The position numbers were made by a program, and so were the translations under genes. Source: Isurus oxyrinchus (lineage: Eukaryota). Taken from it: a DNA stretch of 64,000 nt. The notes below the pieces were generated by a model that saw nothing but the letters and a program-made list of their open reading frames with translations, had not been told where the DNA came from and did no database searches. Shown here in pieces: positions 13,395 to 64,000 of this stretch (its first letter is position 1; each line of letters opens with the position of its first letter). The stretch is taken from contig JANJGN010000007.1 of the NCBI GenBank assembly GCA_026770705.1, forward strand, positions 109,678,001 through 109,742,000. The letters are read 5' to 3'.

Positions 13395-13705
13395 TTTTGG
13401 GCCTCTTTCCTGGCATCCCAACTTCCTTTGGTCCAACCTCATCACCCTCTCTTCTCCCATCATCTTCTGTTGATTCAGATTTGTTTCTTTCTTCAGTGCT
13501 AGAACATGTGTGTTCATGGCCATCAGACTCCTTCACCTCAGCCTCCTGCTCATCTTCAACATCATTATTATCTGAGGTTGCGAGGAAATGCAGTTTTAAG
13601 CCAGTAAAATTGGATAGAAGCAGGAACATGGCCTCAGAACAAAACAGTTTCATACACTTGGCAAGAATATCAGGGAGGCCATCTTCCTCTGCTTGATCAT
13701 AGCAT
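13395..13705 (-). CDS. OGFOD1: OGFOD1 exon 10 (311 nt), includes acidic low-complexity loop
   Basis: ttttatag|[42 protein letters not shown]...acidic...KRPK|gtaagt. Confidence 0.95.
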
Positions 13706-14671
13706 CTATAAAACAAAGAAGAAATATCACAGTACCTGTTACATACCAGAAAAATAAAAGGACCAGATATTGGTTCCTCAATACTGACAAGGTTTGTCAT
13801 TTATTTCAGTGGTACAGGGGATCTGTCATATCTCTGAAGTCTGAATATACTTCAACATGAACTGGGCTTCTCACATGTATCAGTACTTAAAGAACCAGTT
13901 ATATAACTCAACATCAGGATTTATCAAGTACACTGGGGAAGAGGATGCAGACTGAGGCTGGGCCTCCAGTTGAGGTCTAATGAGGATGGGTATAAGGCAG
14001 CAGTCAGACTACAAGCATGGCAAACTATAGCATGGAGCGGGCAGAATCAGGCTGGGAGGGGGAAGGCTACCTGCAGAGTCAGGGTGGAGCAGAGATGCTG
14101 GTGTAAGATCAAAAGTGGACACACTGTTTTCATGGCTGTCAATGTGATTGGTCCCTGTTAATCACACTAGCTACAATACCACATGACTATCACAGACCAA
14201 ATGGCAAGGTCCAAAGGACACTCAAACATGATATGGTGCAGCCACATTTTCACAAAGTGATATGATTTTAAAAATATGAGATAGAAAATTTCCCCACCAT
14301 AACCCAACTGCTTTAAGCAAAAGCTTGAGCTTGCTTCCCATAAGGTCTGTAAAGTAACAAAATGTGTTTGGAGAGAAGCACCAATGTGTTATAGCAACAA
14401 TGCATGGTGCCGCTAAGCAAAGACAAAGGTGCTCAATTGTACAGAACTCATCATCCATACTGTTGTGAGGAATGAAAAAATAAAACGAGGGAGATCCATT
14501 ATAGAACCCTATAAATCAGCTGGCAGGACCTGTAATACCCATCTTCTTTGCATGTGGATGAAAAAAGGTTTGATAGGAATATTGAAAAAAGGTTTAATAT
14601 TTTTGCATTTACATGTTGTAGTGCAAATAATAGCTTTGTTTCCCTAAAACAAGAAAGTGTTGTGACATTCA

Positions 14672-31894: not shown

Positions 31895-34495
31895 GTGTGT
31901 TTATTATAGGCCCCCAGATAGTCAGCAGGAAATTGAGGAGCAAATATGTGCAGAATTTGTGGAGGTGCATAAAAACAATAACAATAGGCTAATTATATTA
32001 GGTGATTTCAACTTTCTCAACATTAACTGGGATAGACATAGTGTTAAGGGCTTGGATGGAGTGGATTTCTTGAAATGTGTACAGGAGAACTTTTTAGGTC
32101 AATATGTAGAGGGTCCAACAAGGGACAGTGCATTGCTGGACCAAGTTCTGGGGAATGAAGCCAGACAGGTGGCTGAGGTGGTGGTGGGCGAACATTTTAG
32201 TGATAGCGACAACATTGTATGGTTTAAGTTTGTTATGGACAAAGAAATTGACAAGTTGCAAAAAAATGTTTTGAATTGAGGGAGAGTGAATTTTAGTAAA
32301 ATAAGGCAGGATCTAGTCAAGGTAGACTGGGAACAGTTACTTGTGGGGAAATCTACAGAGGAACAGTGGGGGGTGTTCAAACAGGAAATGGGGAGGGTAC
32401 AGGCTCAGCATGTTCCTTCTAGGGTGATAGGAAGGAATAACAAGCCCAGAGAACCATGGATGACCAGAGATATCCAGGTTACGATGAGAAGGAAAAGAGA
32501 GGCTTTTAGCAGGTACAAGGGAAGCAAATCAGCAGAGGCATTAGTGGAGTACAGACAGTGCAGGGTGGAGCTTAAGAATGCAATTAGGAGAGCAAAAAGG
32601 GGATATGAGAAAGCTCTGGCTGGTAAAGGAAAGGAAAATCCTATGATATTCTAGAAGTATATCAATGGGAAGAGGATAACCAGGGAAGAGTAGGGCCCAT
32701 TAGGGACCAAGGGGACAATCTATGGGTGGAGACAGAGGACATCACTAGAGTGTTGAATGAATACTTCACATCCGTCTTCACCCAAGAGAATGAGGATGAA
32801 GGTATCGAACTCAAGGAGAGAGACTGCGAGGTTCTTAAGCAAATTGATATAGGGAGTGACAAGGTATTGGAGTTTTCGGCAGGCTTAAAAGTGGAGAAAT
32901 CTCCAGGTCCAGATGATTTGTGTCCCAGACTGCTGAGGGAGGCAAGGGAGGAGATCGCAGGAGCTCTGACCCGAATTTTTAATTCCTCTCTGGCCACGAG
33001 AGAGGTGCCAGAGTACTGCAGAACAGCTAATGTGGTTCCGCTATTTAAGAACGGCTGTAGAGATAAGCAGGGAACTACAGGCCAGTGAGTCTCATGTCAG
33101 TGGTAGAGAAACTATTAGAAGGAGAGTATCTATCTCCACTTGGAGAGGCAAGGTTTGATCAGGGATAGTCAGCATGGCTTTGTCAGAGGGAGGTCATGCC
33201 TAACAAATTTGATTGAATTTTTTCAGGAGGTGACCAGGTGTGTAGATGAGGGTAATGCAGTTGATGTACTTTATATGGATTTCAGCAAAGCCTTTGTCAA
33301 GGTCCCACATGGGAGACTTATAAAGAAGGCAAAGGCACATGGGATACAAGGTAATTTGGTAAGGTGGATTCAAAATAGGCTTAGTTGTAGGAGGCAGAGG
33401 GTGATGACAGAAGGATGCTTTAATGACTGGAAGCCAGTGTCCAGTGGCGAAAAACAGGGACCCATGCTCGGTCCCCTATTATTTGTCATTTATATAAACG
33501 ACATAGATGACTATGTGGGGGGTTAGGATTAGTAAGTTCACGGATGACACAAAGATTGGCTGGGTGGTTAACAGTGAGGTTGAGTGTCTTGGGCTACAGG
33601 AAGATATAGACGGGATGGTCAAATGGGCAGATAAGTGGCAGATGGAATTTAACCCTGAAACGTGTGAGGTGATACACTTTGGAAGGAGTAATTGACAAGG
33701 ACGTATTCAATGAATGGCATAGCATCAGGAAGTTCTGAGGAACAAAGGGACCATGGCGTGTGTGTCCATAGATCTCTGAAGGCAGAGGGGCATATTAGCG
33801 GGGTGGCAAAAAAGGCATATAGGACACTTGCGTTTATCAATCAAGGCATAGATTACAAAAGTTTAGAAGTCATGTTGGAAATGTAGAGAACCTTGGTGAG
33901 GCCACAGCTGGAGTACTGTGTGCAGTTCTGGTCGCCACATTATAGGAAAGATGTGATTGCACTGGAGGGGGTGCAGAGGAGATTCACCAGAATGTTGCCT
34001 GGGATGAAACGTTTAAGTTATGAAGAGAGATTGGATAGCCTTGGGTTGTTTTCGTTGGAGCAGAGAAGACTAAGGGGTGACCTGATCGAGGTATGCAAGA
34101 TTATGAGGGGCAAGGACAGGGTGGATAGGGAGCAGCTGTTCCCCTTAGTTGAAGGGTCAGTCACAAGGGGCATAGGTTCAAGGTGAGGGGCAGGAGGTTT
34201 AGGGGGGATGTGAGGAAAAATTTTTTACCCAGAGGATGGTGACAGTCTGGAAGGCACTACCTGGGAGGGTGGTGGAGGCGGGTTGCCTCATATCCTTTAA
34301 AAAGTTCCTGGATGAGCACTTGGCACGTCATAACATTCAAGGCTATGGGCCAAGTGCTGGTAAATGGGATTAGGTAGGTAAGTCAGGTGTTTCTCATGTG
34401 TTGGTGCAGACTCAATGGGCCGAAGGGGCTCTTCTGCACTGTGATTCTGTCATTCTGTCTGATTCTGTGTGCGTCATTCTGTCTGATTGTGTGTG
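31895..34495 (+). mobile_element. CR1 LINE ORF2, 5'-truncated, with ATTCTGT-type tail
   Basis: YRPP, GDFN, KSPGPD, YMDFSKAF, KFTDDTKIG, RPQLEYC; tail gattctgtcattctgtctgattctgt at 34443-34490. Confidence 0.95.
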
Positions 34496-36116: not shown

Positions 36117-37050
36117 CTGTCAAGAGGGAAAGAAACATAATATTTACATCCAATGTATTAGTTCTGTCTGAAAATATATCTAGAAACTTTCCCTTATTAG
36201 CTCCATTTGATTACCTACATCTAGAACCTAAATTAGTTCTGAATATTCACATCTAGAACCTCACTGTTAGCTCAGTGTGAATATTTAAAGTCATAATCAC
36301 ATCTCACCAGTGCTGTGGACTGATATTTCAGGCATCACAATAGCTGTGTTTTTTTCTTCCCAGTCTCTATTAAATATATTAGTAAATACTCAGACATTAA
36401 AAGATGCCTGCAACCTATGGCCTGTCCTAGTACAATCACAGTTCTCAGTTACAGTGTAAGTGGATAGACTGAACAAGTAGTTTGCTTGTTCTACATCATT
36501 CTGGAAAGGCTCTTTCACATCAGGTCACCTCAACCACTGGCATTCCAGTATGTCTGCTGCATAAGAATCACCTCACCTGACATCATTCCAGGATTTTTGC
36601 TATGCTAGGATCAGCTCAACCTATATCATTACAAGAATTTTGCCGCACAAAGACCTTCATAAATTACAACAGTGACTACATTTCAAAAGTACTTTAGCCG
36701 CAGTGAAAAGCTTTGGGACGTTCTGAGGCTATGAAAAGGCATTGCATGAATGTAAGTTAATTTTTTCCCTCTTTCATCTCACTTTATGACTCCAGTGTGC
36801 TCATTCCACTCTGCTGCATAGTGATTCTCTTGCCCTACATGCCTCTGGTGTATCTGATCCATCTGCTGTACAGAAATCCCCTCAGTCCACACCACTCCAA
36901 AGTACCTGTTGCACCATGATACATGAAGTCCTTTTATTCAATACAGTCTACAAACAATGGAACAATTTTATTGATGCACAGATAACAAAGAGGTAAGAAT
37001 TTTTGCGCTCTCGCCACCCAAACCTTCCCTTTGCAAAATCTGTTTCTCAC

Positions 37051-37199
37051 CTGCTTGAATTTATACAGATCATTCGATTTTTCATGAAAGTTCAGCTTTA
37101 GAAGCTCATTCTTAAGCCCTTCCAGGAATGTTTGACTCTGGATAAAATTTGATATCACACAGTGTGTAAACGGCTGAATGCCCACCAGCAGACCCTTCT
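37051..37199 (-). CDS. OGFOD1: OGFOD1 exon 2 (149 nt)
   Basis: tttacag|...(E)[49 protein letters not shown]|gtgaga; matches the OGFOD1 PF.HCVI.NFI...FHEK.NDLYKF.Q motif. Confidence 0.95.
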
Positions 37200-38131
37200 C
37201 TGTAAAGGGAGGAGGAAAGGCACTGTTAATACCTTGGCAAGGAGCACTTCTGCTGCAATAAATCACAGACATGGAATATTTTCCTTACCATTCCATATCT
37301 TTGTAAAAATAAAAAGGAAGTTGAATTGTCAGAGTCCAAAAGAATTATCTGTACACTGTTACACTGGATACAGATTAAGTACTCTTTCATTTATGCTACC
37401 TGGTTTGTACTGGAATTCTCCTGGCCAGATACGAGTTCAATGTGTGCAGAGCTCTCCTTTTGGCCGGTAGTGTTTGAGTGTACCGACTATGCAAGTCAGT
37501 GCATTCACAATGTATTTGCATTTAAATCAAATATGCTTGCGTTTAAAACATGTTTAAGAGGTCTAACAGACTTCCTGTGTGCTTTATGAACACAGGTTTC
37601 ACACCAAACTAGAGTTACATCAATTATGTAACCCAAGCCCAATGAGGTTGCTCCCCCTGGAGAACAACACATCATTTCACTCCAAAGTCAAATCAGCACC
37701 TGACCCTAATGTAACCTTAGCAACAGTGTGAAGTTGAGCCTGCTTCTCAGCAACTCTAAAGTTAATGCACAAATGCACCATAAATCCACCATAAATGTTT
37801 CCTCTGTTTGCGTGCCTTAAGGTTTAAAGCTTCCACTGGAAAAAGCCTATCACTTGTGAAGGCGCCACTAACCTCCAAAGCAGGTATCGATGGGCAACAT
37901 CCATTTCCCTAACTCCAGGTTTCCTGTCCAGGAACCAACTTTGAATTCAGGTCATTAGATTTTGAAGCACCACTGCATTTCCTTTGTCAAACGCCTTATG
38001 TTTTTTAACAAGCCTTTTTGCAAAACATCTTATCAGATGGCTTCTGAAAATCCTTATATATATCTCATTGCATTCCTTTATCTAACCAATCATCTCTGCA
38101 ATGTGAAATCTTGTTAAGTTTGTATAACACA

Positions 38132-41100
38132 ATCCAGAATTTTACATTGCAGGATCGGGCATGTGGCCAACCCGACCTTGTGTGAAATCGCACATCTGCG
38201 CACGTCCTGACATCATTGCGCCATATTACGGTCAGTGGGCGACACGGCCAGATAGTCACCCGTTTTTAAGTGAAACTCAATCCAGGGCAGGGTAAAAGTC
38301 AACCAGTGCTGTGGCTATATGAGTAGGCTGGAGCTTAGGTGAGAGTTCTAGGTGCTTTTCTGACAGTTATTTGCATTTCCTGGGTTTTCTAGAGGACTCT
38401 TTGGCTTACAAGCTTTCTTAAAGGCTTTCTGCCATGTGCATACTTCAGGGCACTGTAACATCTGTATTCCAGCAAACAGGGATTATCTACTCTGCTGGAG
38501 GGACCTCCCTGAAGAAGGAGAGGGTCAGAAGGGAGAGGGGGGCTAGTGTCCGCAGGCAGCATCCCAGAGAGTGACCGGTAGAAAGAGAGACGTAGCCACA
38601 CGAGGTGCAAGACCAGCAGGAAGTGCAAGGCAGAAGGGTCTGCAGAAGGCATCATTATCCTGCAGCCAGAGTCTACAAGCAATGCTGCAGCTATCTGGAC
38701 ATGTTAGAGGTCTGGTGCTGAAGGAGACTCCACCTTTTTACGGAGACTGTGATCTCCATTTGCCATATGATTTGCCCAGAGATCGCCTCAAACTGTGTTG
38801 GTGGTCACCCAACGCCAGTGGCCGTTAAGCTGACAGTGAACCTGAACTTTTTTGCCTCCTATTCCTTTCAAGGGTCAGCGCGAGATCTATGTGGTGTTTC
38901 CCAATCTGCTACCCACAGCTGTGTCACGCTGGTCACTGACACTCTGTGATGGGTGATGCACTTCATTCATTTCTGGACTGACGAAGCCAGCCAGGCTGAG
39001 CAAGCCAGAGTCTTCGCTGTAATTGCTGGGTTCCACGCATCCAGGTTACTATAAATTAGAAGTTCCCCTCCAAACCACTCACCATCCTGACTTGGAACTA
39101 CATCACTGTTCCTTCACTGGGTCAAAATCCTGGAACTCACTCTCTAACAGCACAGGGACTGCAGTGGTTCAAGAAGGCAGCTCACAACTGTAATATGGGG
39201 CAAGGATGTTGGGACATGTGCAGATGTTTTCTCATGCGATTTCACGCAAGGTCAGGTTGGCCACGTACAACCACCTTCTCAAGGGCAAATAGGAATGGGC
39301 TTAAATACTGGCCTAGCCAGCGACACCCACATCCCATGAACCAATAAAAAACACTCATGACAATAAAGTTGCCAGCAGGTAAGTTGGGTGCCTTCACCAA
39401 CAGAAAGGGTTCCCACTCCATCAACATCCAGATTGTTTGTGACCACAAGACACAGAACCGCCAGATTCCACGATGCCTACATCCTGCAGCACTCCCAGGT
39501 GCCAAGGCTCTTTATCGCACCGGCTCAGCTTGATGGTTGGCTCCTGGGTGACAAAGGCTATCCCCTGAAAAGGTGGCTCCTGATGCCACTCTGACACCCA
39601 AGGACAGAAGCGGAGCAGAGGTACAAAAGAAGTCATGCCCCTACAAAGACAGCAATTGAGAGGGCCATTGGCCTGCCCAAGATGAGGTTCCACTGCCTGG
39701 GCTGATTGAGGAAGCACTGCAACATCCTCCAAAGTGAGTTTTGCTTATTACCGTTGTGTGCTGCAATCTGCTCATTTTGGCTCAGTCAAAGGGGGACCTT
39801 TTGGAGGTTGAAAACAGCGAGGTAGCTCCCCAGGCCACAAAGGCAACTCAACTGATGGGTCTGACGAGGTGCCAGAGGAGGCGCAGGGTGAGGAAGTGGC
39901 TGCAGAAGTGATGAACCTTGTGAGAGGCAGGTTGATCAGGGAAGACTTGATTCTCTGTTCGTTCAGCTAGGCATCCAAGGCACGGCCAGAAGGTGAGGGC
40001 AAGGGTAACACCTCCTTACTGAGCATTCGTGATGAGGCCTGTGCACCCTATGTCAACTACCTCTGAAATAACGTTTGCAGCCCTACCATCTATCACAAGT
40101 CACTCCCATGCCCACATCAATGAGAAACATAAAGCAAATTCAGACCATGAAACATCATAACATCTTCCAAAGGTGGTTTTGTTTACACAGTTTGAACTTA
40201 GAACAGGTTTAAACTGAAGTAATATCACCCATGCCAACCCCTCTTGTATTTATAGTATTGTAAACTTCCACTTGCAAGTGCTGCGCCTAGGTGCCACTGG
40301 CAGTGGCATAGAGGCTGCCTGCTGACTGTGATGACCTGTCAGCCCTGATGACTTTGGCAGACATCCTCTGGCTGGCAAAGCCTGTGCAGGCACGATCTGG
40401 GAGGGTGCGTCCAGCGCCATTGCTGGGCGCTCCTCAGACATCATCTTATCAGATGCCATGGGCACTGGCAGAGGGGAGGAGCAGCTGCTGCCTTCATCTG
40501 GAGCACACTGAGAGGAGCCCACAGGTGTAACACGCAGCTGGCTTGCCAACATGAGGTTGTTTCGAACCTCCCTGCTTGCCATTGATGGACGAGCACCTAG
40601 CAGAGTGACTAGTTGCCTCGTCCATCTCTCACACAGGCAGTGACCTGCTGAGGTCAGTACCAGTGTGTGGGCTTGAGATCCGAGCGCGACCCCAGGAGCC
40701 TCTGATTCTGTTCCTGGAGTTGCCTCTTCATGAAAGTCGCCGCTTTCTCAATGGAGGAGGCCGTCCACTTGGAGCTCTGGATCAATGCAGTGCTCATGCT
40801 TTGTGTGGACTCCTCCATGACAGAGACCAGGCACACAGACCATCAGGGGTCTCTGCCAGATCTTCCCGCACATCCTGCTAGACATCCAGCATCTGCTGCC
40901 TGATGGATGACCACAGGGGCATCATCTGCCTCAGAGTCAGCATGTTCCTGGTCTCCAGCAGTCCTCCGACTGCCGGTGCCCTGGATTTTCCCTGCTTTCA
41001 CCAGCTCCTCAAGCGAGTGTGATGTGCCCTCACCACTGTGCACTACAAAGTGATCCGACGCGCTATTGCCCACTGACATGCCATATCTGCACTGGTGCTT

Positions 41101-42392
41101 GGATTAGAAAGGTGATGTGACACAGGCGCATCTGTCCGCAGCTCCTCCTCAGATGTCCGAAGAGTTCCCTCAGCGTCCATCGGGCATCGTGAGGATGGCG
41201 CTTCTGAGGGAGGAACAGAATACATCAGTTGATTACATTGTAACAAAGTGACTGTCCATGAATTACAGTTGCTTGTCAGAATGGACAGATGCCTCACTGA
41301 GGCACTGAGATTCGATGAGCAATGGAGACTGTTGATTAGAACTTCACATTAGAGATGTCTCGATCCTACAGCTCTTATTCACTTCCCCAGTCTCTCACTT
41401 GTCCTCTGGACTTTTACCTTCATCTGAGACCCCTGCCTCTCTGCGACCTGTGGACCTTGCTCCACGCTCACATATCCAGGGCGTCCATCTTGAACATGGA
41501 AAGTATCAGTATCTTGGGGGCCTCACCACCCATTCGTGCACACTCCAGCGCATTATGGCTTCTCTTCCCCTGTGCAGGCAAAAGTGCATTCATTAGTGCA
41601 CTCTCCACCTGCCACACCATCCCAGCCTCGCCCCCTCCAACCCAAGCAGACACAGGTTGAGGTGCCCATCAGTTTAGCATACCTTATCCTTCTATACACA
41701 CAAGGTAAGCAGGTACATCTCCCAGCCTTGGCTCGCACAGGGAAATGTGCCATTTGGCACTCTGCATCTCACATCCCTGAGAGCCACGAAGAACAACCAC
41801 TCTCCAAGATATTGATACATAGTTCCATGTCAAGTTGGTACTGACCTTTGCGGAGCACAGAAGATCATTGAACCATTTCAGCACTGGATCCATGTGCAAC
41901 GCACAACATCATGCCTGCTCACCTAAGCAACCACCTCCATCCAGGTCCTCTTTATCCGGTGGGGTGGCTTCCTCTTGCCATCCCACATCATGGGTATGTC
42001 ACTCACTGCCTACACTGGAGTGCACAGGCACTCATTCATCAGAGAATGGTGGTGGGGTGGGGGGGGCAGAGTGCCCAATGGCACTGCCCTCCCACCTGGC
42101 GTGCCCAGCGGGTGCTGACGCCATCACTCCTGTCAAGCATACGATCTTGCACTCTCTCATCAACAGTTCCCCAAGGGTCCTCCCCAACTCCTGGCAGCCT
42201 TCAGGGAGCTGCCTGCGCTCTTTTAAATGCCCCCTCCAGGTCACCACTGGATCCAGCTCGCGCCCCCGCCGGCAGCGCTGAGCCAGTGTCTGGGCATGTT
42301 TCATGCTGGCATGGCCCTTAATTGGCCAGCCAGCGTGAAATTGTGTCTGCGTTGCGATCGCGCATGCAGAATGTGCGTAAAGTTTAGGCCAT
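38132..42392. mobile_element. PIF/Harbinger transposon: degenerate DDE transposase (+, about 38560-39970) and convergent Myb/SANT-like gene (-, about 42100-40250)
   Basis: [65 protein letters not shown]; minus-strand KWFNDLLCSAK; imperfect TIRs CCAGAATTTTAC / GTAAAGTTTAGG. Confidence 0.88.
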
Positions 42393-42736
42393 GATATTTC
42401 TTTAGTAAATCTATGCTGGCTGCTCTCAATTAACCTACCCATTTCTAAATGTTCACCAATTATATCCTGGATTATTATGCATTAAAAAGCTTTGATTGTT
42501 TATCCAAAAGACATTCACAGCATGGTCACTATTGTTATGTAGACATGCACAGCATTTACCACCACAATCACTCAAAAAAAACTGCAGAGACGAATGGTCA
42601 GTTAATTTGCTTTTAGTAGAGTTGATTGAAGGATAAATGTTGGCCAAAGTACTGGGAGAAGTCCCCTGTTCTACTTCAAACAATGCAATTACATATTTTA
42701 CTTCCATCTACTCAAGCAAATGAAGTTTCAGTTTAA

Positions 42737-43447
42737 TGGCCCAGATTTCATCATCAGTGTTGAAGCGACAGCACTCACCACTGACATCAAAGGGAGCTGC
42801 CTACAAAAATCTACCAATTTCTATGGTATGGATTCCCCCCTTGCCAACCTCAGTTTGAATCTGGTGCCAAATCAAGGGGATCTTCAGACATCCAACCGTA
42901 GTGGTGTCATCAAGAAGGGTAAGCAGCCAATCACACTGAAGTATTCTCATAAACAGCTAACTAGGAAGTAAAATGCAGTGAACTTTTCGATTTAAATTAA
43001 AGCTTTATTGAGAGGAAAATAAATGATTGGAACATATGCATGGGTTCAAGGTGGAAACTGAAAGATAAACTATTTTTAAAAATTAAGATGTGATTTTTTA
43101 AATCATAAAAAAGAAATTTGACATCCCACAAATATAAAATTAGATTTCCATGGAGGAAGAAGCTGTTCAACAGTAATTATAACCAGAAAATCATTATCTC
43201 ATTCAACAAGGTGTAACTTTTTCAAAGATCTTTCCTCGTTCAAACGTGAAAATCTGTCAGTTCAATGATTTCTAATACGAAGCTTCAACAGCGCACCCTA
43301 TGGGGAAGCACAGAATCACTAACAGCAACTCCAGGGTTTCCGCGTAAACTTGTATAAATTAGGTCTTCAGAAAATGTCTTTAATTTCAGAGGATTATTTT
43401 GCCTATGCTAATAATTTAGTCGCCACTACTATCACAAAAATCGGGCA
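42737..43447. mobile_element. MITE-like non-autonomous element
   Basis: Ends GGCCCAGATTT ... AAAAATCGGGC are imperfect inverted repeats; it interrupts a DeuSINE-like copy. Confidence 0.5.
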
Positions 43448-43676
43448 ATATGCCTTCTGAAAGACAGCACTCCCTCAATATTGCATTGAATTGTCGGTCG
43501 ATTATTGCTCCGTGATCTTCTGATTCAAACAAAAGCGCACCCACTGATCTAAACTGACATTGAAATTGTTTCCTCGGCCTTGGTACCTCTGACTGTCTTT
43601 CGAGTCTTCTGATTGCTTAAGCCGTCTGAGAGTTTTAGCACCTTCTCCCAGCCCCATACGCCACGCCGCCCCTCAC

Positions 43677-43830
43677 CATGTGAGTACTCGAGCCCCCGGC
43701 TCCAGGCCTCGCTCACTTGCTCCTTCGTTTCCAGCAACAACGGGTTGAGTCCCGCAGGCTCCTGCTGCTTTAGCCGTCGCTTCCCTCCGCCTCCACTTTC
43801 TGGATCACTCTGAATCCTCTTGGAGCTCAT
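43677..43830 (-). CDS. OGFOD1: OGFOD1 exon 1 (coding part, 154 nt)
   Basis: ATG at 43830; MSSKRIQSDPESGGGGKRRLKQQEPAGLNPLLLETKEQVSEAWSRGLEYSH; donor G|GTGAGG; basic NLS-like KRRLK; GC-rich context. Confidence 0.88.
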
Positions 43831-43890
43831 CTCTACCCCGGAGAAGCAGTTCCAAATCCTGCGTCTCACCGCCTGCCGCTGCCTCACCAG

Positions 43891-43910
43891 GGACTACATT
43901 TCCCAGCAAC
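43891..43910. promoter_or_regulatory. ZNF143/THAP11-type ACTACAnnTCCCAG motif in the OGFOD1 promoter
   Basis: GGACTACATTTCCCAGCAAC about 60 bp upstream of the ATG in a GC/CpG-rich patch. Confidence 0.7.
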
Positions 43911-44109
43911 ACCCAGCTCACTACCAGAATCATCGCCTCCCGCAATGGCGTCTCCTAAAGGTCGGACAGGAGTTGCAGCCACTGGGGCAGCGCAGAATAA
44001 CCTGGCCAATGACAACTGCGCCATTCCCCACTCAGGCACTGGAGCGATGCGATGGTGCACTCCCAGTGGTAGCAAATGAGACTGCAGCCACTTGTGTTAA
44101 TATTTGCCG

Positions 44110-45149: not shown

Positions 45150-47375
45150 GCCTCTTGCTTAGGGATATAAGGTGCATTCAGAGGTCTTTAAAGGTGACAA
45201 GCCAAGTTGATATGGTGGTTAGGAAAGCAAATAGAACACTTGGATTGTACATAAGAGCATTGAATTTAAAAAAAGGAAATTATACCAAACCTTTATGAGC
45301 CACTGATTAAGCATCAGTTGGAGTATTGAGTTCAATTTTGGGCATCAGGCTTGAGGAAGCAGAGGGTGCAGAGGAGGTTTGCTAGGATGATACAAGTGTT
45401 TAAGAAAATAGATCATGACTCTCAACAAATGTATATCCCAGTGAGGAAGAAGGTTTCAAGGAAGGGGATAAACCAAACATGGTTAACAAAGGAAGTTAAG
45501 GACAGTATAAACTTGAAAGAAAAAATATACAATGCAGCAAAGATTAGTGGTAAAATAGAGGATTGGGAAAGTTTTTAAAACCAACAAAAGATGGCCAAAA
45601 TAATAATAAAGAGGGAGAAAAATTTTGAGGGTAAACTAGCAAGTAATATAAAAATAGACAGTAAGAACTTCTTTAAATATATAAAAAGGAGAGGCCAAAG
45701 TGAACAGAGGCTGCTCAGAGAATGAGGCTGGGGAAATGATAATGGGGAACCAGGAAATGTCAGTTGAATAAATGCTCAGTCTTCATGGCAGAAGACAGCA
45801 ATAGCATTCCAGAAGTACTAAATAATCAAGGGGCAAAGGGGGAGGGAGGATAACTATCACTAGGGAAAAAGTGCTAGGGAAACTAATTTGGCTAAAAGCG
45901 ATAAGTCCCCTGGACCTGATGGATTGTTGCATCCTAGGGTATTAAAAGAAGTAGTTACAGAGATAGTGAATGCACTGGTAGTAATCTTCCAAGCATCATT
46001 AGATTCTGGAAAAGACCTAGAGGATTAGAGAACTGCCAATGTAACACCCTTATTCAAAAAGGGAGGGAAACATAAAACAGGTAACTATAGCCCAGTTAGC
46101 TTGACACATTCATTGGAAAAATGTTGGAGTCTATTATACAGGATGTAATGCAGAACATTTAGAAATACATAATCTAATCAAGCGGTGTCAACATAGCTTC
46201 ATGAAGGGGAATCATGCCTAACAAATTTATTAGAATTATTTGAGGAGCTAACAATCAGGATAGATACAGGGGAACCAATAGATGTAATATATTTGGATTT
46301 CCAAAAGGTGTTCAATAAGGCAACTTAATAAGATAAGAGCCTTTTGTGTTGGGTGTAGTATATTAGCACGTATAAAGGATTGGCTAACTAATAGAAGACA
46401 GAGAGTTGGGATAAGGGGCATTTTCAGGATGGCAACCTGTAACTGGTGGAGGGCCACAGGGATAAGTGCTGGAGCCTCAATTATTTACAATATATGTTAA
46501 TGAGGCAAGTGGTGAGAATGACACAAGGAGCCTACAGAGGGATATAGACAAGTTAAGTGAATGGGCAGAAACTTGGCAGATGGGATATAATGTGAGAAAA
46601 TGTGAGGTTGTGCACTTTGGCAGGAAGAATAGAGAAGCTGAATATTATTTAAATGGAGAAAGACTGAAAAAAGCTGCAACACAGAGGGATTTGAGAGTCC
46701 TTGTTCATGAATCCCAAATAGCTAACATACAAGTTCAACAGGTAATCGGGAAGGCAGATGGAATGTTGGCCTTTATTTCCAATGGAAAGGAGTATAAAAA
46801 TAGGGAAGTCTTGCCAAAAATATGCAAGGCACTAGTTAGACCACACCTGGAATACTGTGAATAGTTTCGGATCCCTTATCTAAGGGAAGATATACTTCTG
46901 CTCCTATGTCTTATGGTCTTATGATGAGGAACTTTAATTATGTGGAGAGATTACAGAACCTGGAACTGCATAACCTTAGAATAAAATAAGTTAAAAGAAA
47001 GCCTAATAGAGGTAATCAAAAATGGGAGGGTTTTAATAGAAAAAGTAGAGAGAAACTTTACTCTGGCAAGTAAGTCAATGACCAGCGGTCATATATTTAA
47101 AATAATTGGCAAAAATTATGGGAAAATGAGGAAACAACTTTTTCACACATGGCGCTGTTAACATCAGGAGTGCAATACCTAAAATGGTGGTGGAATCAAG
47201 ATTCCATAGGAACTTTCAAATGGTGATTGAACATATACTAGAAAAGGATGAATTTGTCAAGAAATGAAGAGACATCTGGGATATAAGAGTAAATTGGAAA
47301 ACCCTTTCAAAGTGCTGAGACAAGCTAGATAGGCTGAGTAGTATTCTTCTGTGCTGTAAGTTCAATTCTATGATT
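45150..47375 (+). mobile_element. Nested CR1 LINEs: an older 3' fragment interrupted by an internally deleted CR1 (about 45395-46922)
   Basis: Outer RVQRRFARMI breaks at about 45392 and resumes at about 46923; inner copy has KSPGPD, YLDFQKVF, RPHLEYC and its own cttatg tail. Confidence 0.85.
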
Positions 47376-55740: not shown

Positions 55741-57165
55741 TCCAGTGTTCTTATATTGACCAAGAGTAAAATCGTTTAAGGAAGCTGTCGTTCCTTGTAG
55801 ACAGTACGGACAAATGTTATAAAGTGTTAAGACGAGCCGTCATGCACTAGACTTAAAATGTTCAGGTGTTACAAAATAGCTAAAGAATTACATCTAAGTG
55901 ATGAAAGTCAACTTCAGCTAGGGGCAAATGAGGTGGCTGCTGAACGTCTGTCCACTTTACATCCTATCCGCTTTAGCAGCTGGTGCGTGATAAGTGGTTA
56001 ATCTACTATCACCCGTTTTGCGCCAACACCGAAGTTGAATTTCAAGCCAGATTTGGTGGAGCACAGGGATCTCAGAGGGTTGTCGGGCTGGAGGAGCTTG
56101 CAACGATAGGGCAAAATAACGGCCGGAGAGATGAAATTTTTAACTCCAGGGATAACCAGGACAACTAAAAATATCAACACCAGGCAATAAATCACTTTCT
56201 CAACCCGAATACTAAATCCCTGCATAACACGTCTCAACTAAGATGCAAAACTCAAGCAAAGAAACGCCCTCCAAAAAGCCTCACGACGACTTATAAGTCT
56301 TGCATAGCACATGTTAGAGGCGAAGTAAAGCACCCTCAAACGTCACCAACATTCCAATCGTAATAGAACATTCGTTATGAGCAACGTTTCTAACTCCCCC
56401 CGCAGAATCAGCCCTGCAACATTTCTGAATGAAACTGGCAAACACTGCTTTCACAAGGCAAAGGAACATTTCATTCTGCAAGTACGGACTACCCAATTAC
56501 GAACAATACCTGGACAGCTGTCTACCTCATTGCGTTCCGCTTAGTGTTCCTTCGGATAACAGTTTGGTATTCAATTTCAAATTGATAGTTTCAGTTAATC
56601 TGATTCCTGTGGCTCAACTGAGACCAGATCTGAATAACAACTTCACCAGTGTTAAAGTCTGAATTGAAAACTATCGTTGTCATTTAGAAGTAGTATTAAT
56701 CAATGGTGAGACAAGTGGAACAACAAGGAGACCAGAACAGCAACACGGAACCAATGGAATTTTGTCTGGACTGTCACTAGCCATCAACTAACGTGGGAGC
56801 ATAGGAATTTCTAGACAAAAAAATGACCAAGATCCATTTAGTCTCTCTTTTAGTATCCTAGGTTTAAACAGAGTTCGCGCATTGGTTTAAGATTAAGAGT
56901 TAGCTTGATAGAGTTTATGTTAGTTTGTTAGGGTTCGCGGTTGCTGTTAGGAGTTGGGCTAGTGGTTGGAGTTAAAGGTTTTGGGGTTAGAAACCGCTAT
57001 TTACATGGCAGTTATAAAGATATAGACAGGCTAATTCAAGGCACATCGCTACGGAATGTCACCAGCCTCTGACACATTTTTTCCCTGGCCTTGTGTAAAC
57101 TAACTCAATCCGAACTGCCTGAAGTACTTAGCTTACTTGCGTTCATTCCACTTCTACCATCCGAC

Positions 57166-57205
57166 ATGCTTCCATGTATATTGATCCTGGGGATTGCACC
57201 CACAG
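57166..57205 (+). CDS. IgSF receptor: leader exon
   Basis: ccgacATG; MLPCILILGIAPT + 1 nt, donor CAG|GTACT; phase-1 split leader typical of Ig/TCR/IgSF genes. Confidence 0.8.
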
Positions 57206-57379
57206 GTACTTTAATAGTTACTAGGTAATGATAAGAACAATACCTGTATAGTGATGTTATTTGATAAGTTTATTCATCTCCATTTATGGTTCTTATAATT
57301 TATCAATCTTTTTAACCCCGTTTCTACCTTTATTTATATGTATAATGAGATGTTTATTTTTATGTTTATATTCTGATAG

Positions 57380-57694
57380 TTGTTGCGGATTCCAAAATCG
57401 TCCAAATCCCGCCACTCACAGTTGCACTCAAAGAGACAAACATTACTCTCTACTGCACATTCCCACTCTTTCAAGAGGAGTCAGAGGTAACGGTTCACTG
57501 GTGGCGACATGGTGGAAACGGGTTCTTGGGCCACGGAGAAGCGACCAAGGAACAGTATAAGCTTTTGAGAAAAGGGGGAGCCGTCCTCCATCTTCTGAAT
57601 GTGAGCTTCAAAGATTCTGGCCGCTATTACTGCTCCGTGTACTGTGGGGGAAGAATGTTTGGGAATGGAACCGGCTCAGACCTCCTTGTGTCCG
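57380..57694 (+). CDS. IgSF receptor: germline-joined VJ-type domain exon (NKp30/NCR3-like)
   Basis: 315 nt, phase 1-1, open: VVADSKIVQIPPLTVALKETNITLYCTFPLFQEESEVTVHWWRHGGNGFLGHGEATKEQYKLLRKGGAVLHLLNVSFKDSGRYYCSVYCGGRMFGNGTGSDLLVS; B-strand Cys, C-strand Trp, DSGxYYC, diglycine G-strand; donor G|GTGAGT. Confidence 0.92.
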
Positions 57695-59113
57695 GTGAGT
57701 CCCCGTTCCAATCGGTACAGGTGTTGGTTGTGCAATGAGTATTTGCTAAAATAGCAAAGAGGTAGAGAAGGGTGCGGCATACGGGTTTGGGGTTTGTATC
57801 CAGTGCCAGCATCAAGACACTTTGGGGGTGACATCGTCGATTTACGGGGAAGCGTTTCTGTCTGTATTCTGCGCAATTCTGTTTCCCTGACGAGTACAAG
57901 AAAGACACCTTCCTCCTTCAGTGACAATGGGTAGAACATGACTTTGCGGCGCTGTCCAGAACAGTTGACAGCAAGTTGGTGATTCCAACTTCAATCGGAA
58001 TAAAAGTCGGGGCAGATGTAAAAGGAGCTGCCCGCTGACTCTAGTCCTGTTTCCATTACCACAAAAAGTCAATGTGTGCTATATACGGCCTGGTATCGGT
58101 ATGGAAGATTCCCTCTCGTTGTTGTTGGTCAAACATTTGCTCAGAAAGTTCCTACACGTTTACTGGAAACATCAAACATAACGAATTTCTGTTGTGGAGA
58201 AAGTAGGACTGGTCACTCCAATTTTGTTCAAAATTGACATGCAATTTTGTTCTCGAGGTATTAAGTCTTCTTTTGGAGCAACTTTATGATTTCATTAGAA
58301 GCAAAACCACAAAGGACCTTTATAAACACACTTACAATGCCTCTGCACATAGCGACCACAGAAACCCTTCATTGCGGTTCCTCGCAACACGACACGGGTG
58401 ATTTTCCCATTCATCTCCTAGAACCCCGGCTTCCTTGGATTCCTGCGGCTCTTTCGGCGGAATTAAGGCGAACCAGGGAGAAATTAAGCAAGCCTCTGAC
58501 GGGAATACCTAAAGAGGTGAAATATCCTTTCAGAAATAGTGATGCAAGCAGAATCTATGATTTTTTTTAGAAGGGGAACTGGATGAGTATGTCAATGTGA
58601 CTAGCTGGATTGTTCTGTCAGAGAGGGGACCAGAACACTAAGCCAAATGGATTCCTGCTGCATTGTAAAGCTTTATGACTCTTTAACCATAAAACCATGA
58701 TTCGGTAACCTGGAAGCGCAGATTTAAGCTAATTAACAAAAGAGTACCAGGGGAGAGGAGGAGAAATAGTTTTGCACGGCAGGTCCTATGATGTGCAAGT
58801 CACAACCTGGTAGCAAGCCGAATAAATAGTAATTTTCAAGAGGGTGTTGGGTATATACTTAAAATGGAAAGTTTTGGCAGGGCTATGGATAGCCTCCTGA
58901 CCTCTGTGACGCTCCCATATATATCACTCCTTTCTCCATTAAGGGCTCCATGTAATTTCTAGCTTCATATTTACTACTATTTGAAAATGTAGGAATTAAA
59001 AACGTTCCAATGAAGCACAATATTAAACCTACCCGTCCTAAATTCGTGTTATGAACAGAAATACAGTAATCATTAATATTTCAATCAATAAATAATGTTC
59101 TTTTTCTCCTAAG

Positions 59114-59415
59114 TTCGGCCAACGCCTCTGACGATCGGCTTGCTTGAGTCTAAATTCCGTCCGTCCACTGCCCTGACTCTTCGGTGTGACACGGCTAAGT
59201 TTTACCCCGAAGATCTCAATTTGACTGGGTATCGGAACAAGGCGAAAATTGTAACTGGGATCAATACTACGAAACAGCGAACCGGCGTGGGAATGTATGA
59301 GGTATATTCAGCACGTTAAATCATACGGGGCCATCCCGCAGCGCAGCTGTATACAGCTGTCAAGTGTCTCATCTTTCCCTTCAGACTCCCGCCAAAATCA
59401 ATTACAGCTTTGATG
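59114..59415 (+). pseudogene. IgSF receptor: C1-set domain exon, frameshifted
   Basis: ctcctaag|VRPTPLTIG...LTLRCDTAKFYPEDLNLT(G)YRNK...GMYEV, frameshift near 59302-59310 (TAA at 59317-59319), then STLNHTGPSRSAAVYSCQVSHLSLQTPAKINYSFD; C..FYP and YxCxVxH are C1-set signatures; the 3' donor position is uncertain. Confidence 0.85.
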
Positions 59416-59705
59416 GTACCGCTGATTCATTCTTTTCAGAAAGGTTCGCTCAGAAAACGTTTATCATTTTACCTAAGACACGACCACGTGTAAGCATTTG
59501 ATGCCTCTGCATTCGTTTATTGCATTGAGGATTCATTATTTAGGCTGTGAATTATTTCATTTGTTGGCATTTTATTTTGAATATTTTAAAACATATATTA
59601 AATTCCCTTTACAGGATTTCATGATCCTGTCTATCTCTGGGTTTTCTTGCTCGTCGAATTGATATTAATGCATGTTGACCATTTACCGCCGTTACTCTTT
59701 TGCAG

Positions 59706-59805
59706 GCGCTAACGACGTTAATCCATTGTTGGTGTCTCGACATTTAGTGGGTATATTAATAATAATGGTCCTTATGATCATCGTTGGGAATTCATTTAAG
59801 CTGAG
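59706..59805 (+). CDS. IgSF receptor: stalk/transmembrane exon with Arg
   Basis: ctcttttgcag|(G)ANDVNPLLVSRHLVGILIIMVLMIIVGNSFKL(R); phase-1 start; donor AG|GTACT, or read-through to TAG at 59878. Confidence 0.75.
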
Positions 59806-60109
59806 GTACTGTCAAATGAAAGACGCACCATTATTACAAGAGCGCATCAGCGCTTTACAAACCGCATATTTGCTGTAGGTCAGCGTTCACCTATAGGAGG
59901 CGAAAATGAATAGTCTTTGAAGTTGGATATGAGGACTACAATTTGCACATTGAAAGTAATAGGATGTTATCGTGGAGCAATAGTGGGCATAGGGCTCCCT
60001 CGACTATATCTTCAGGCCAGCAAAGCCTCACAAAGGACAGCGATCCTCTCCTTGGTTAGCAACGTTGTAAAGATATTTGGATTGTTTCTATGCTCCAGGG
60101 AAATAGAGG

Positions 60110-60395
60110 ACACGGTTTTAAAGGAAGAAGTATGCCGTTTAAGACGGGGATAAGGAGGAATTTCTTCTCTCAGAGGGTCGCTGGTCTTTATAATTCTGTT
60201 CCACAGAGGCCAGTGGAGGCTGGGTCGTTGAATATATTCAAGCCTGAGCGATACAGGTTTTGACGGGGTGGTGGGGTGGGGGCAGAAAGTGGAGTTAAGG
60301 CCACAATCAAATCACCATGACCTTACTAGATGGCGGAGCAAGCTCGATGGACCAAATGGCCTATTCCTATTTCTATTTCTTATAACCTTATGTTT
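60110..60395 (+). mobile_element. CR1 3' UTR fragment in the IgSF gene intron
   Basis: aggaggaatttcttctctcagagggtcg...aatggcctattcct...cttatgtt. Confidence 0.75.
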
Positions 60396-60539
60396 TTACA
60401 AGTGGTTTAAAATAAAGCATTTAAGATTTCACCAGATATAGCAAACAGAGGAATATATGGGGTACCAGTTACTAAACGACCGCAAAAATCTAATCGCTGG
60501 TTATGAGGCCAATTATTTCTTTCAAAACCATTTCAAAAA

Positions 60540-60990
60540 GAAAAAATAAATCTATATACCGCCTTTAATGGCCATTTAAAATCTCAAAGCATTTTAAAGC
60601 CAATGAAGTACTTTTGAATTGTAGTCACTGTTGTAATGAAGGGAACAAAGCAGCCAACTTGCCCATAGCGAATTGCCACAAACAACAATCTGATAATGAC
60701 CAAGTGATCTGTTTTCCTGATTTTTGATTGAATGATAAATATTGGCCAGGACACCAGAGCTGAATCGTCTGCTCTTCTTCTAAATCGTGCTATGGCTTCT
60801 TTTACTTGCACTTGAAAGGACAGACAGTGCCTCGGCTAAATATCTCATATCTAAAGACAGCACCTCTGACAGGGCAGCACTCCCTCGGTAGTGCACTTTG
60901 TGTCAGCCTTGATTTTTGTGCTCAAGGCCTGGAATGGGAGTTGCACCCACAACCCTCTAAACCAGGGGTAATAGAACTACCAAACGAGCC
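60540..60990 (-). mobile_element. DeuSINE-like SINE
   Basis: Reverse complement matches 8698-9030 and adds a tRNA-like head. Confidence 0.72.
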
Positions 60991-61171
60991 AAGGCGGACA
61001 CTCATTGTTAGAAAGGAGGAAGTTTTTTTTATCTGATGCTTGTTTGGGGTGATTGTAAATCCATTTTTGTTAAATAGCGTTTGTGATTTGGCTGGAGTCA
61101 GCGCAGGTAGCTTCCTTTTCATAATGCATTACTCATGATATATTGTGTTCACCTGTTTTGTTTTTCCTTAG

Positions 61172-61193
61172 GTTTTTTCTGCAAATTGAGTAA
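61172..61193 (+). CDS. IgSF receptor: candidate short cytoplasmic terminal exon
   Basis: Strong pyrimidine tract tgttttgtttttccttag| then (R)FFLQIE* in phase with the 59805 donor. Confidence 0.45.
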
Positions 61194-64000
61194 CTCAGAA
61201 AGCTTTCAAGAAACACATTCTACTTTAAGGCCGGCGTGCCGAAAACATGTGTACCCCAAGGAGAATAGAATCAATCTCCCAGATGCCTGTTTATTGATAA
61301 ACTCAGAGTAGAATACATTGTTTCCAATAGTTGGGTTGGAGTCTGATTTAACCATGTTTATGGATAAAATGAAGTTCGCTGATCACCCTGCTATTGTTAC
61401 AGTCTGGAGATAACCTGAGAAACTCGTTAAAGTTTGAAACAAATGTATATTTATGGTTAAAAATAGCAATAGCTAATAGTTGTGTTGTCAAAGGCTATAT
61501 TTAGGGAGTGGGAAGATCTCATATTCCATATTGGACTATACTGAAAGGGCTGATTTCTGCAAGTGGGGCAGTATGATCCCATTATGTTGTTTTTGTCCAG
61601 GGAGGGTGAAATCAGCCAGGTCAGACACTCAATGCCTGTACGGTTAGTCACTCCCTTGGAAAGACTTCATGAGTGAAGCTCAGGATGTGATGCTCCCTCC
61701 ACCTGAGACAAAAATCCTGCTCACACTTAGAGATTAAAATTAGCTTTGCACAATATCAAGTTTCAGGCCAAATTGAATCGTGGCCCGTTTTCACTCGGTC
61801 TGATTTGCTTTGTTCGTTGAAGAAAATGGAAAAGCAAGTCAGGCAGAATTCAAAAACAATTCGCTATTGCCAGTACTGCATTGTTGCCCGGGATAAACAT
61901 AGACCTCTTACCAATTAGGTTTACCCTTGAAAATTCGTCAGTTGAGTGAGATAACAGAAAGTGTACTACCAACATAGAAGGGAAGTTTATCAGCACGTAT
62001 GGAAGAGGACGGGTAAAATTGGTGGGGTTGGCAGTTTGTAATAATCATTCAAAGTAATCAGTAAATCAATCCAATGCCAGTATTGAATGTTGTGCTTTTT
62101 TAGCAGGTCCTGCAGGAAACAACTGTCTGGAACACGACAAACTGTGAGGAAGATTTCACTGTCTCCAAGAAAATTGTGAAACAGGTATTCTGTGCAGGGT
62201 ATGACGACTCTCAAGCCCCAATATGTGATAGGGGTAGATTTTGACTTGGTGAGATAGCGGAGAATGGGGGATAGAGAATTGGCAGTGCCTTTTACATCTC
62301 TCACAAGTTTTATTGCAGTGAGAATAGGAACAAAATTCATTAGGAATAAGAGGAATGTAAAACGGACTGCTACCTCACTGTCTTCCAGCTTACACTGTCT
62401 CCAAAATCCAAGATCTGGCCCCATGCTCCCTATAGTATTACATACCCAAATACAATAATTATACTGTCAGCGCCCACTGGCTCCAGCACAACCATTACAA
62501 TTTTGATTTCATCCATACACGGTAATTTGTTTTTTTGCTAAGTTTTGTAGCCAAACTTCTGATTAAACCCACAGAAATAGATACTTAATAATGATAGGAT
62601 CCAACTAAAATGTCCATCGTAATTGAATTGATTTTTAATAAAGCAATGCGGGATAGATCTTGTAAAACGATGACAGCTTCTTTGCAAACTATATCTCTCC
62701 TCATTGAAGTCAATCTGGTGTACGATAGATCCGATGTGCAATAACACGGGCAGCTGCCTTGTTGTCAGTCGTTTTACAATGTAGCACAAAATCAATATCG
62801 GCCTCATTTTCTCCTGAAAGGAAAACAGTAACATGAGTTTACTATGAATAGCGTTGGCCTGTTTAACAAAAATGAACTTCTAATGATATAATTGGAGACA
62901 CCAGAAAATTGGAGCCCAGTTCTGTTTAAATTACCACCTGTAGTGTACAATATATTGACAGTATTATTTTCATCATGAAGACTAGATCGTCAATTTGCCA
63001 CCTAGGGGTAAAACCGATATTGCGAATCAGCCGTTGGTAATAGAAACCGTTTGGGCAGCATGTGGAAAATCTAACCCGCGTCGCGTACTGCCAGCTTTTT
63101 AATGGAATGGGTGATTTCTGTTTGTACCATCACAGAATCTATTTAATAAAGGATTTTCGTGCAACCTATCTAAGCAAAGTGATTATTTCAATTACGCCTT
63201 TTGTATCAGTGGTAAGATTATAGGAAATAAAAATGTTTTTCTTCAAAATCCAGCGGTGTACAGGCTCCATTTCCCCCTTGGACGCTGTTGTGAGCTGGGT
63301 GATATTGAATTAGCCGCGCCGGATTTTCATCTCCAGTGAAGTAAATGAAAATTGGGACACCCATTTGAATATCGCGCATCTTACACCATGTCCAAAGTTA
63401 AAACTACCCCAGGCATTCTTTAATTTGATTTTTTATTAATATTCCTTAGGCCACTAGTTTCATTAATAGGAAGACTAATAGATTCTCCGGGCACTCTCCT
63501 CTCAGGGTCTGAACTCTTTGATGACTTTATCAGATGATAGTTTTTTTTTAGAAATTTAATAAATTGGTCTTCACTGGGGGACATGTTTAGTGACTTCCCA
63601 TGTTACCTGGTCTGTCGCTCACATGAAAGGTCCGAATAAAGGAGCGCTGAATTTGCTCTACTGGTCCTCCTCATCTGAGCAGTTGTAGCAGTTCCCGAAG
63701 ATATATGTCAAATACGTGGATGTGGAGCAGAAACCACGTCCCCTCACGCGTACACTCAACTTCCCATTCCAGATCGCAATCTCTACACTGAGGGCACTGG
63801 CAGAGAGTCATTTTGCGCTCCAAGCTGTGCACAACGCACCACTCACATCAAATTGAATGCAGCAAATTTCCACCAACTATATGACGAAGTTGCCCAAAAT
63901 ACTTTCATAATTCAATAATCAAAAGTTACTTGACCATTAAAATACACTTTGATATGAAGTCCAATACATTTGCAGGCATGCTTGATGAATGAAATTGATG

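Follow-up and report, generated by a model that had tools for sequence, protein, structure and literature searches.

A probably disabled activating-type gene of a chondrichthyan V-C1 receptor family next to OGFOD1 in Isurus oxyrinchus

Background

The stretch of DNA considered here comprises 64,000 nucleotides of the genome of Isurus oxyrinchus (contig JANJGN010000007.1 of GenBank assembly GCA_026770705.1, positions 109,678,001 to 109,742,000 of the forward strand) and is called below, at its full length, the window. Between its positions 57166 and 59879 lie the exons of a gene for an immunoglobulin (Ig)-like membrane receptor, coding for a leader, a V domain whose J-like G strand is already joined in the germline, a C1-set domain and a membrane segment with an Arg residue. 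A preliminary description, made from the sequence alone, had seen in this gene an NKp30-type V domain joined to a C1 domain of the T-cell receptor (TCR) or Ig type, the architecture proposed for the ancestor of antigen receptors before the appearance of RAG. Our present results connect the gene instead with a family of V-C1 proteins of cartilaginous fishes, in which inhibitory-type and activating-type members occur side by side, and suggest that the copy in the window is probably disabled.

Genes with a non-rearranging VJ exon have been described in the literature under the names UrIg, UrIg2, NCR3 and PRARP (PMC12227049, PMC10751288). A search of the accessible literature found no publication on a paired V-C1 receptor family of chondrichthyans.

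Results

Exons of the receptor gene

Four exons and one further candidate exon can be listed on the plus strand of the window:

57166-57205, plus strand: leader exon; ATG, 13 codons and one further nucleotide, ending in phase 1, with donor ACAG/GTAC; read from the translation
57380-57694, plus strand: V exon with germline-joined J-like G strand; 315 nucleotides, open, phase 1 at both ends
59114-59415, plus strand: C1-set exon, disabled; 302 nucleotides, two more than in the relative; read from tblastn and translations
59706-59879, plus strand: membrane exon with Arg (LLVSRHLVG...); acceptor in phase 1, short tail encoded in the same exon up to the stop codon TAG at 59877-59879
61172-61193, plus strand: tail exon proposed in the preliminary description; seven codons, unsupported

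The splice acceptors and donors across the four exons appear normal. The leader exon encodes MLPCILIL..., which resembles MLPSILIL... of the nearest relative, the horn shark protein P0001 (MLPCILILGIAPT in the window, MLPSILILLITHN in P0001). The V exon scores above the cut-off in a scan against Pfam, both with V-set (29.5 bits, cut-off 26) and with Ig_3 (33.5 bits), and keeps every invariant and near-invariant column of the family alignments (FYC..., VxWW, DSGxYYC, NGTGSxLxV); a scan with NCBIfam returned nothing relevant. Its 3' end encodes the J-like strand NGTGSDLLV, immediately followed by the consensus donor TCCG/GTGAGT. The J-like strand is thus joined to the open V exon in the germline, as the preliminary description had stated, and the gene does not show the layout of a rearranging receptor, in which a split V exon with a recombination signal sequence (RSS) is accompanied by a separate J. 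The absence of an RSS beside the V exon was likewise confirmed: no RSS-like combination of heptamer, spacer and nonamer was detected when 56.5-60.5 kb was scanned, and a single such site exists in the entire window. When 16 proteins of the family were used as tblastn queries, one V exon and one C1 exon were recovered from the window and no second copy of the gene was found.

The preliminary description had counted four well-supported exons joined in phase 1. This holds for the leader, V and membrane exons; the C1 exon, with its 302 nucleotides, is frameshifted.

A family of V-C1 proteins in cartilaginous fishes

The V exon was searched against 1.84 billion representative proteins. The best match is P0001 (XP_067906048; 72% identity, E 6.7e-46), which is labelled 'tapasin-related protein-like' by NCBI. 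At E<=1e-10 the search returned 62 proteins, most of them 245-420 residues long and 35-48% identical to the query. Altogether the V exon matches some 60 V-C1 proteins of the family, distributed over 13 species among the sharks, rays and chimaeras; besides the horn shark, members come from Mustelus, Heptranchias, Carcharodon, two Chiloscyllium species, Scyliorhinus, Hemitrygon, Hypanus, Mobula, Leucoraja, Narcine and Callorhinchus. Their NCBI labels are inconsistent (SIRP-alpha-like, tapasin-related-like, Ig lambda-1-like, NCR3LG1-like, uncharacterized). Those matches from outside the chondrichthyans that were looked up are proteins of other kinds, namely NCAM2, turtle pIgR-like proteins and frog proteins with multiple V domains.

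A tree built from 90 V domains unites the window sequence and P0001/P0151 in one clade, with a support of 99 in the Shimodaira-Hasegawa-like approximate likelihood ratio test (SH-aLRT). P0001 has the same leader as the window gene together with an intact C1 domain. The preliminary description had allowed that both domains might fall firmly inside a well-characterised family; the grouping actually obtained is with an unnamed family of chondrichthyans.

Members of the family share a common build, consisting of a V domain, a hinge of the VPPTPL type, a single C1 domain and a membrane segment. Two kinds can be distinguished by what follows. About 20 proteins have long tails with motifs resembling the immunoreceptor tyrosine-based inhibitory motif (ITIM), LTYAAL (LxYAxL) and TEYAx[IL]. 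In about a dozen, Arg (Lys in one of them) is located within the membrane segment, near its outer end, or immediately ahead of it, and the tail is short and devoid of tyrosine motifs. Both kinds are intermixed in the tree, and near-identical V domains occur in P0056/P0057 and in P0077/P0082. Such near-identical V domains on both ITIM and Arg members are a mark of paired inhibitory and activating receptors. Annotated isoforms without the C1 domain exist for some members (P0019 compared with P0153, P0046 with P0063, P0139 with P0090), and all of them are of the ITIM type.

At least four genes of the family in the horn shark, Heterodontus francisci (P0001/P0151, P0015/P0153, P0006 and P0060), are located on one record of 99.65 Mb, so the family is at least chromosome-linked in this species.

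Membrane exon and tail

Read from 59706, the membrane exon encodes LLVSRHLVGILIIMVLMIIVG. It contains an Arg that is invariant across 8 short-tail members of the family, the Arg of the window falling in line with that of 7 such members. The pattern of the membrane segment is closest to that of stingray P0070, and the distance from the end of the C1 domain to the Arg, 15 residues, is that of catshark P0127. Past the membrane segment, the window has RYCQMKD where P0127 has RYVQLKS (RYxQxK shared). With phmmer, no significant match to the family was obtained for the membrane exon, a segment too short to yield one, and the homology is therefore read from motif and spacing. At this level of motifs, the window gene has one of the two forms of membrane segment seen in the family (with an ITIM tail, or with Arg and a short tail), namely the second. 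The Arg-containing membrane segment with a short tail had been recognised correctly in the preliminary description, and intact relatives have the same succession of leader, V(J), C1 and Arg-containing membrane segment.

The sequence suggests that the membrane exon reads on to the TAG at 59877-59879. Given this read-through and the likeness of RYCQMKD to RYVQLKS, a donor at 59805 and a separate exon at 61172-61193 are unneeded. The tail exon proposed earlier is unsupported: no homologue shows it, and it needs the donor at 59805, which is apparently read through in P0127. It also lies past a high-copy repeat of about 1 kb (60061-61047). This repeat is interspersed and reaches depths of 10^4 to 10^5, with many internal joints, in all four sequencing runs used below. 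The idea that the ending '...IIVGN' seen in the window is a decayed form of a family motif '...DH' was dropped, since stingray members end in '...IVIGT'.

Lesions in the C1 exon

The C1 exon of the window carries two lesions, a replaced Trp codon and two extra bases that lead to a stop codon:

59227-59229, plus strand: GGG (Gly) in place of the Trp of the C strand; read from the family alignment
59305-59306, plus strand: two extra bases (TA) shifting the frame; +2 nucleotides relative to P0001
59317-59319, plus strand: stop codon TAA in the entry frame, four codons past the shift

With 302 nucleotides, not a multiple of three, the exon cannot be both entered and left in phase 1. Read in its entry frame, it yields 66 C1-domain residues before the TAA is reached; the remainder of the domain, with the signature YSCQVSH, sits in a different frame. 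The same split appears in tblastn with family proteins, and the two pieces are 71% and 58% identical to P0001. The first piece has SIRP gamma/alpha d3 as its best matches in PDB, and the second matches MHC (major histocompatibility complex) class II beta2, Ig light-chain C and TAPBPR. As each piece matches domains of the C1 type, the exon is a genuine C1-set exon that has been split. In the Pfam scan the first piece matches C1-set weakly and below the cut-off (16.5 bits, cut-off 21); the intact C1 domain of P0001 reaches 56 bits. The C-strand Trp, which is Gly in the window, is present in 19 of the 19 family proteins aligned. The single intact C1-set domain past a VPPTPL-type hinge, found throughout the family, is missing from the window: the gene is a member of the family by descent, its product is not. 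A micro-intron in place of the frameshift was also considered and rejected, because the GT...AG stretch available (59302-59341) has only 40 nucleotides, too few for an intron, and leads into the wrong frame.

The lesions in read contigs

Contigs (not raw reads) from four public runs were aligned to positions 57100-61300 of the window, and the differences given here are those among the matches listed. Run X1 carries the same species label as the assembly and is possibly the assembly's own sample, so that its agreement with the window is not independent. The other contigs come from the related organisms B, C and D.

X1 contains contigs identical to the window, which cover the V exon and the frameshift site at a depth of about 34, and a second set, about 5% different from the window, at a depth of 20-23. 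Contigs of the second set lack exactly the bases 59305-59306 and are thus in frame; they have T at 59227, which gives TGG (Trp). The contigs of B, C and D differ from the window by about 4-6%, and all of them read TGG at 59227-59229. A two-base gap at 59305-59306 is absent from these contigs, and the one from C, of low depth, is ungapped throughout 59197-59463. Since all other versions read TGG, the Gly is private to the lineage of the window. The two extra bases occur outside the assembly as well and may predate these species. At the listed positions of the C1 exon where the window stands alone against every other version, the substitutions mostly change the amino acid (Trp to Gly, Asp/Glu to Lys, Ala to Gly); these changes, few in number and taken from a biased listing, fit relaxed constraint in the window lineage.

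The second version in X1 extends over 57100-60214 at about two-thirds of the depth of the window version and agrees with organism D in most of the listed differences. It alone lacks the extra bases at 59305-59306, and the pattern appears mosaic. This in-frame version may be a divergent allele, or else a paralogue or copy-number variant.

These data bear on the suspicion that the damage is an artefact of the assembly or is confined to one haplotype, the in-frame version with Trp being the real working gene of the species. The second contig set of X1, lacking the two bases, reading TGG and being the sole version among the X1 contigs aligned over 59166-59241, is what speaks for it. However, the contigs identical to the window are the deeper ones at the frameshift site (about 34 against 23), and the depths in X1, about 36-41 where the window version occurs alone and 52-57 where both occur, do not fit two equal alleles. 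The contigs of other species are ungapped at 59305-59306. The possible origin of X1 from the assembly sample, with the dependence that follows, is also to be set on this side. We consider an artefact or a private haplotype quite improbable.

Comparison with known receptor families

An AlphaFold model of the V domain (predicted local distance difference test, pLDDT, 88) has strands A, A', B, C, a trace of C', D, E, F and G, and no C''. Foldseek retrieves with it shark VNAR, CD79b, PD-1 and TCR V domains, with TM-scores of 0.70-0.79. In VIA-align, the skate IgNAR V domain is matched with Z 14.4 and a root-mean-square deviation of 1.9 over 98 residues; IgNAR V, NCAM Ig1, CD79b, TCR V and PD-1 all lie within about 2 Z units of each other.

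NKp30 is found neither among the top 60 PDB matches of the V exon and of a profile built from the V domains of the family, nor among the matches listed by Foldseek and VIA-align (about 50 each). As a control, the frog protein P0075, labelled NCR3, finds human NKp30 first in PDB, with E 2e-12 compared with 3e-6 for the next match. Since a true relative retrieves NKp30 while the window V domain does not retrieve it by sequence or by fold, the likeness is one of generic design, a J-like strand and an Arg, and not of kinship; the label 'NKp30-type V' given in the preliminary description was not upheld. The features shared with NKp30/NCR3 are the Arg in the membrane segment, the short tail, the J-like G strand within a germline V exon and a short domain of the V/I type. 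The ectodomain of NKp30 is a single Ig domain; the window gene differs by its C1 exon between the V and membrane exons. Its neighbour is OGFOD1, and the 64 kb of the window showed no MHC gene. Aligned with the V exon of the window, the V domains of P0075 are 25-28% identical, with 16-20 gap positions.

Two amphibian proteins met in these searches, P0075 (Leptodactylus fuscus) and P0144 (Bombina bombina), contain three tandem V domains each. P0144 has an Arg in its membrane segment and would fit a multi-V NKp30-like activating receptor.

A V-C1 profile of the family matches titin best in PDB and UrIg2 second (E 1.7e-23), followed by other matches that include an IgA1 heavy chain, SIRP alpha (2.7e-19) and light chains (about 1e-16). 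With P0001 as query, CD276 comes out best (E 1e-21, summed over two repeats), and light chains, UrIg2, SIRP alpha (3e-15) and B7-H6 (3e-12) are matched as well. No known family stands out, and the present family therefore stands on its own. Its relation to each of the candidates can be summarised as follows.

SIRP proteins are similar in that their V domain is non-rearranging, carries a J-like strand and is succeeded by C1-set domains, and in comprising ITIM members and short-tail members with a charged membrane segment on similar ectodomains. The best matches of the first C1 piece also point to SIRP, as do the 'SIRP alpha-like' labels which NCBI gives to many members. The family differs from SIRP in its one C1 domain in place of two, in Arg in place of Lys in the membrane segment, and in its V domain, which the model predicts to be short and to lack a C'' strand; moreover, CD276, Ig chains and UrIg2 score equally well or better.

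The B7 proteins CD276 (B7-H3) and B7-H6 also consist of a V domain followed by a C domain, and one member of the family has been automatically named 'NCR3LG1-like'. The family differs from them by its J-like strand NGTGSxLxV and by a classical C1 signature, YxCxVxH. To our knowledge, B7 proteins are ligands and not paired receptors with ITIM and charged-membrane forms.

The teleost NITR and the receptors LILR, KIR, PIR and CHIR form multigene families as well, and in them ITIM members occur beside charged-membrane members with near-identical ectodomains. Such paired Ig-like receptor families are clustered and contain frequent dead copies, and the V domain of NITR carries a J-like motif. In contrast to all of these, the second domain of the family described here is of the C1 set and not of the I/C2 type, and the family is chondrichthyan.

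UrIg and UrIg2, finally, likewise have a non-rearranging VJ exon followed by C1 and are found in cartilaginous fishes (PMC12227049). UrIg2 differs by its heavy-chain-like succession V-C1-C2-C3, whereas the present family, a large multigene family of paired receptors, combines a single C1 domain with a membrane segment and tails for signalling.

The view that the locus is an intact relic of the pre-RAG stage, in which a V domain of the NKp30 type is combined with a C1 domain of the TCR or Ig type, can be weighed against these comparisons. It draws on the J-like strand in the V exon with no RSS, on the strong matches of the V-C1 profile to UrIg2 and Ig chains, and on the weak match to a frog NKp30-like V domain (28% identity, E 3e-9 pairwise). 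That last match needs 18 gap positions, however, and NKp30 itself stays outside the top 60 sequence matches and the structural matches listed, where a true relative finds it first. The locus adjoins OGFOD1, while NCR3 is described as MHC-linked (PMC12227049), and the copy is broken. We regard an intact relic as very improbable. The architecture of the supposed ancestor amounts here to a generic resemblance, with the V-C1 unit, when compared by profile, about as distant from UrIg2 as from Ig light and heavy chains, SIRP proteins or B7 proteins; its place in the literature is already occupied by UrIg and UrIg2 (PMC12227049).

Genomic neighbourhood

OGFOD1 is encoded on the strand opposite to the receptor gene, which is located about 20 kb upstream of it:

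13384-37272, minus strand: OGFOD1; exons 13384-13800 and 36937-37272, matching PDB entry 4nhx with E 1.2e-19 and 4.4e-17

The adjacency to OGFOD1, noted already in the preliminary description, is borne out by these two exons, which match the human structure 4nhx. Pfam gave no match with the two open reading frames (ORFs) concerned, and their identity comes from the PDB sequence search.

Much of the OGFOD1 introns and of the intergenic space is occupied by ORFs of the reverse transcriptase or long interspersed nuclear element (LINE) type, located at 18553-20068, 27538-29473 (minus strand), 31959-34186 and 46466-46864. RVT_1 is matched with E 1e-6 at 18553-19347 and 2e-13 at 33140-33523. Just upstream of the 5' exons of OGFOD1, the stretch 38000-44000 has a G+C content of 0.50-0.52 and contains long ORFs with no Pfam match; it may be a CpG island, a promoter or the first exon of another gene.

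Discussion

We propose that the locus is an activating-type gene of the chondrichthyan family of non-rearranging, paired V-C1 receptors, and that the copy in the window is most likely a pseudogene or a null allele; we put the probability of this reading at roughly 0.7. Intact activating members of the family would bind a ligand with the V domain, which the C1 domain would hold away from the membrane as a stalk. The Arg buried in the membrane would pair with an acidic residue of an adaptor carrying immunoreceptor tyrosine-based activation motifs (ITAMs), of the FcR-gamma, CD3-zeta or DAP12 type; the position of the Arg and the short tail without tyrosine motifs suggest such coupling. Paralogues with ITIM tails and similar V domains would oppose the activating signal.

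From the haplotype in the window, a full V-C1-membrane protein probably cannot be made. In a message that includes the C1 exon, the stop codon lies 96 nucleotides before the last exon junction, so that nonsense-mediated decay is predicted. Skipping of the C1 exon would be the only route to a protein, and would join the V domain to the Arg-containing membrane segment.

Several observations weigh against the proposed loss. X1 holds the in-frame version with Trp, and the animal may thus retain a working copy. Over 59166-59241 that version is the only one among the contigs aligned from X1, so the Gly codon comes from the assembly alone. The gene model of the horn shark relative has no membrane exon. 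The gene was not found in a few tiny runs of the species, presumed to be RNA, a result uninformative either way. Finally, the V and membrane exons are intact and both in phase 1, which makes a V-only product possible, and isoforms devoid of C1 are annotated in relatives.

The intact phase 1 exons and the isoforms devoid of C1 are also the basis for supposing that the gene still works as an activating receptor with a single V domain, the C1 exon being skipped and the V domain joined to the Arg-containing membrane segment in the build of NKp30. In the contigs of organisms C and D the +2 state seems to be present as well; C1 may accordingly have been long unused while V stayed open. Against this, the splice sites of the C1 exon are good, so inclusion of the exon and decay of the message are the default expectation, and an open exon of 104 codons at about 5% divergence is no evidence of selection. 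All C1-less forms found in the family are of the ITIM type. We think a working single-V receptor unlikely. A related scenario would have the C1 exon out of frame since before the related sharks split, with the V and Arg-membrane exons intact; the gene would then be turning into a single-V NKp30-like receptor by exon loss, and the in-frame Trp version would persist as an old allele or copy-number variant. This we consider distinctly unlikely.

As a disabled member of the family, the copy in the window contributes an example of the activating type with a location next to OGFOD1. It also adds evidence of turnover, as one sample contains both a dead or null version and one that is in frame. The bearing of this copy on how rearranging receptors arose is no greater than that of SIRP, B7 and UrIg genes. 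The family outweighs this copy in importance: cartilaginous fishes possess a large set of paired V(J)-C1 receptors, at present scattered under at least five public labels, which is a candidate for a recognition system of innate or natural killer (NK) type in the oldest jawed vertebrates.

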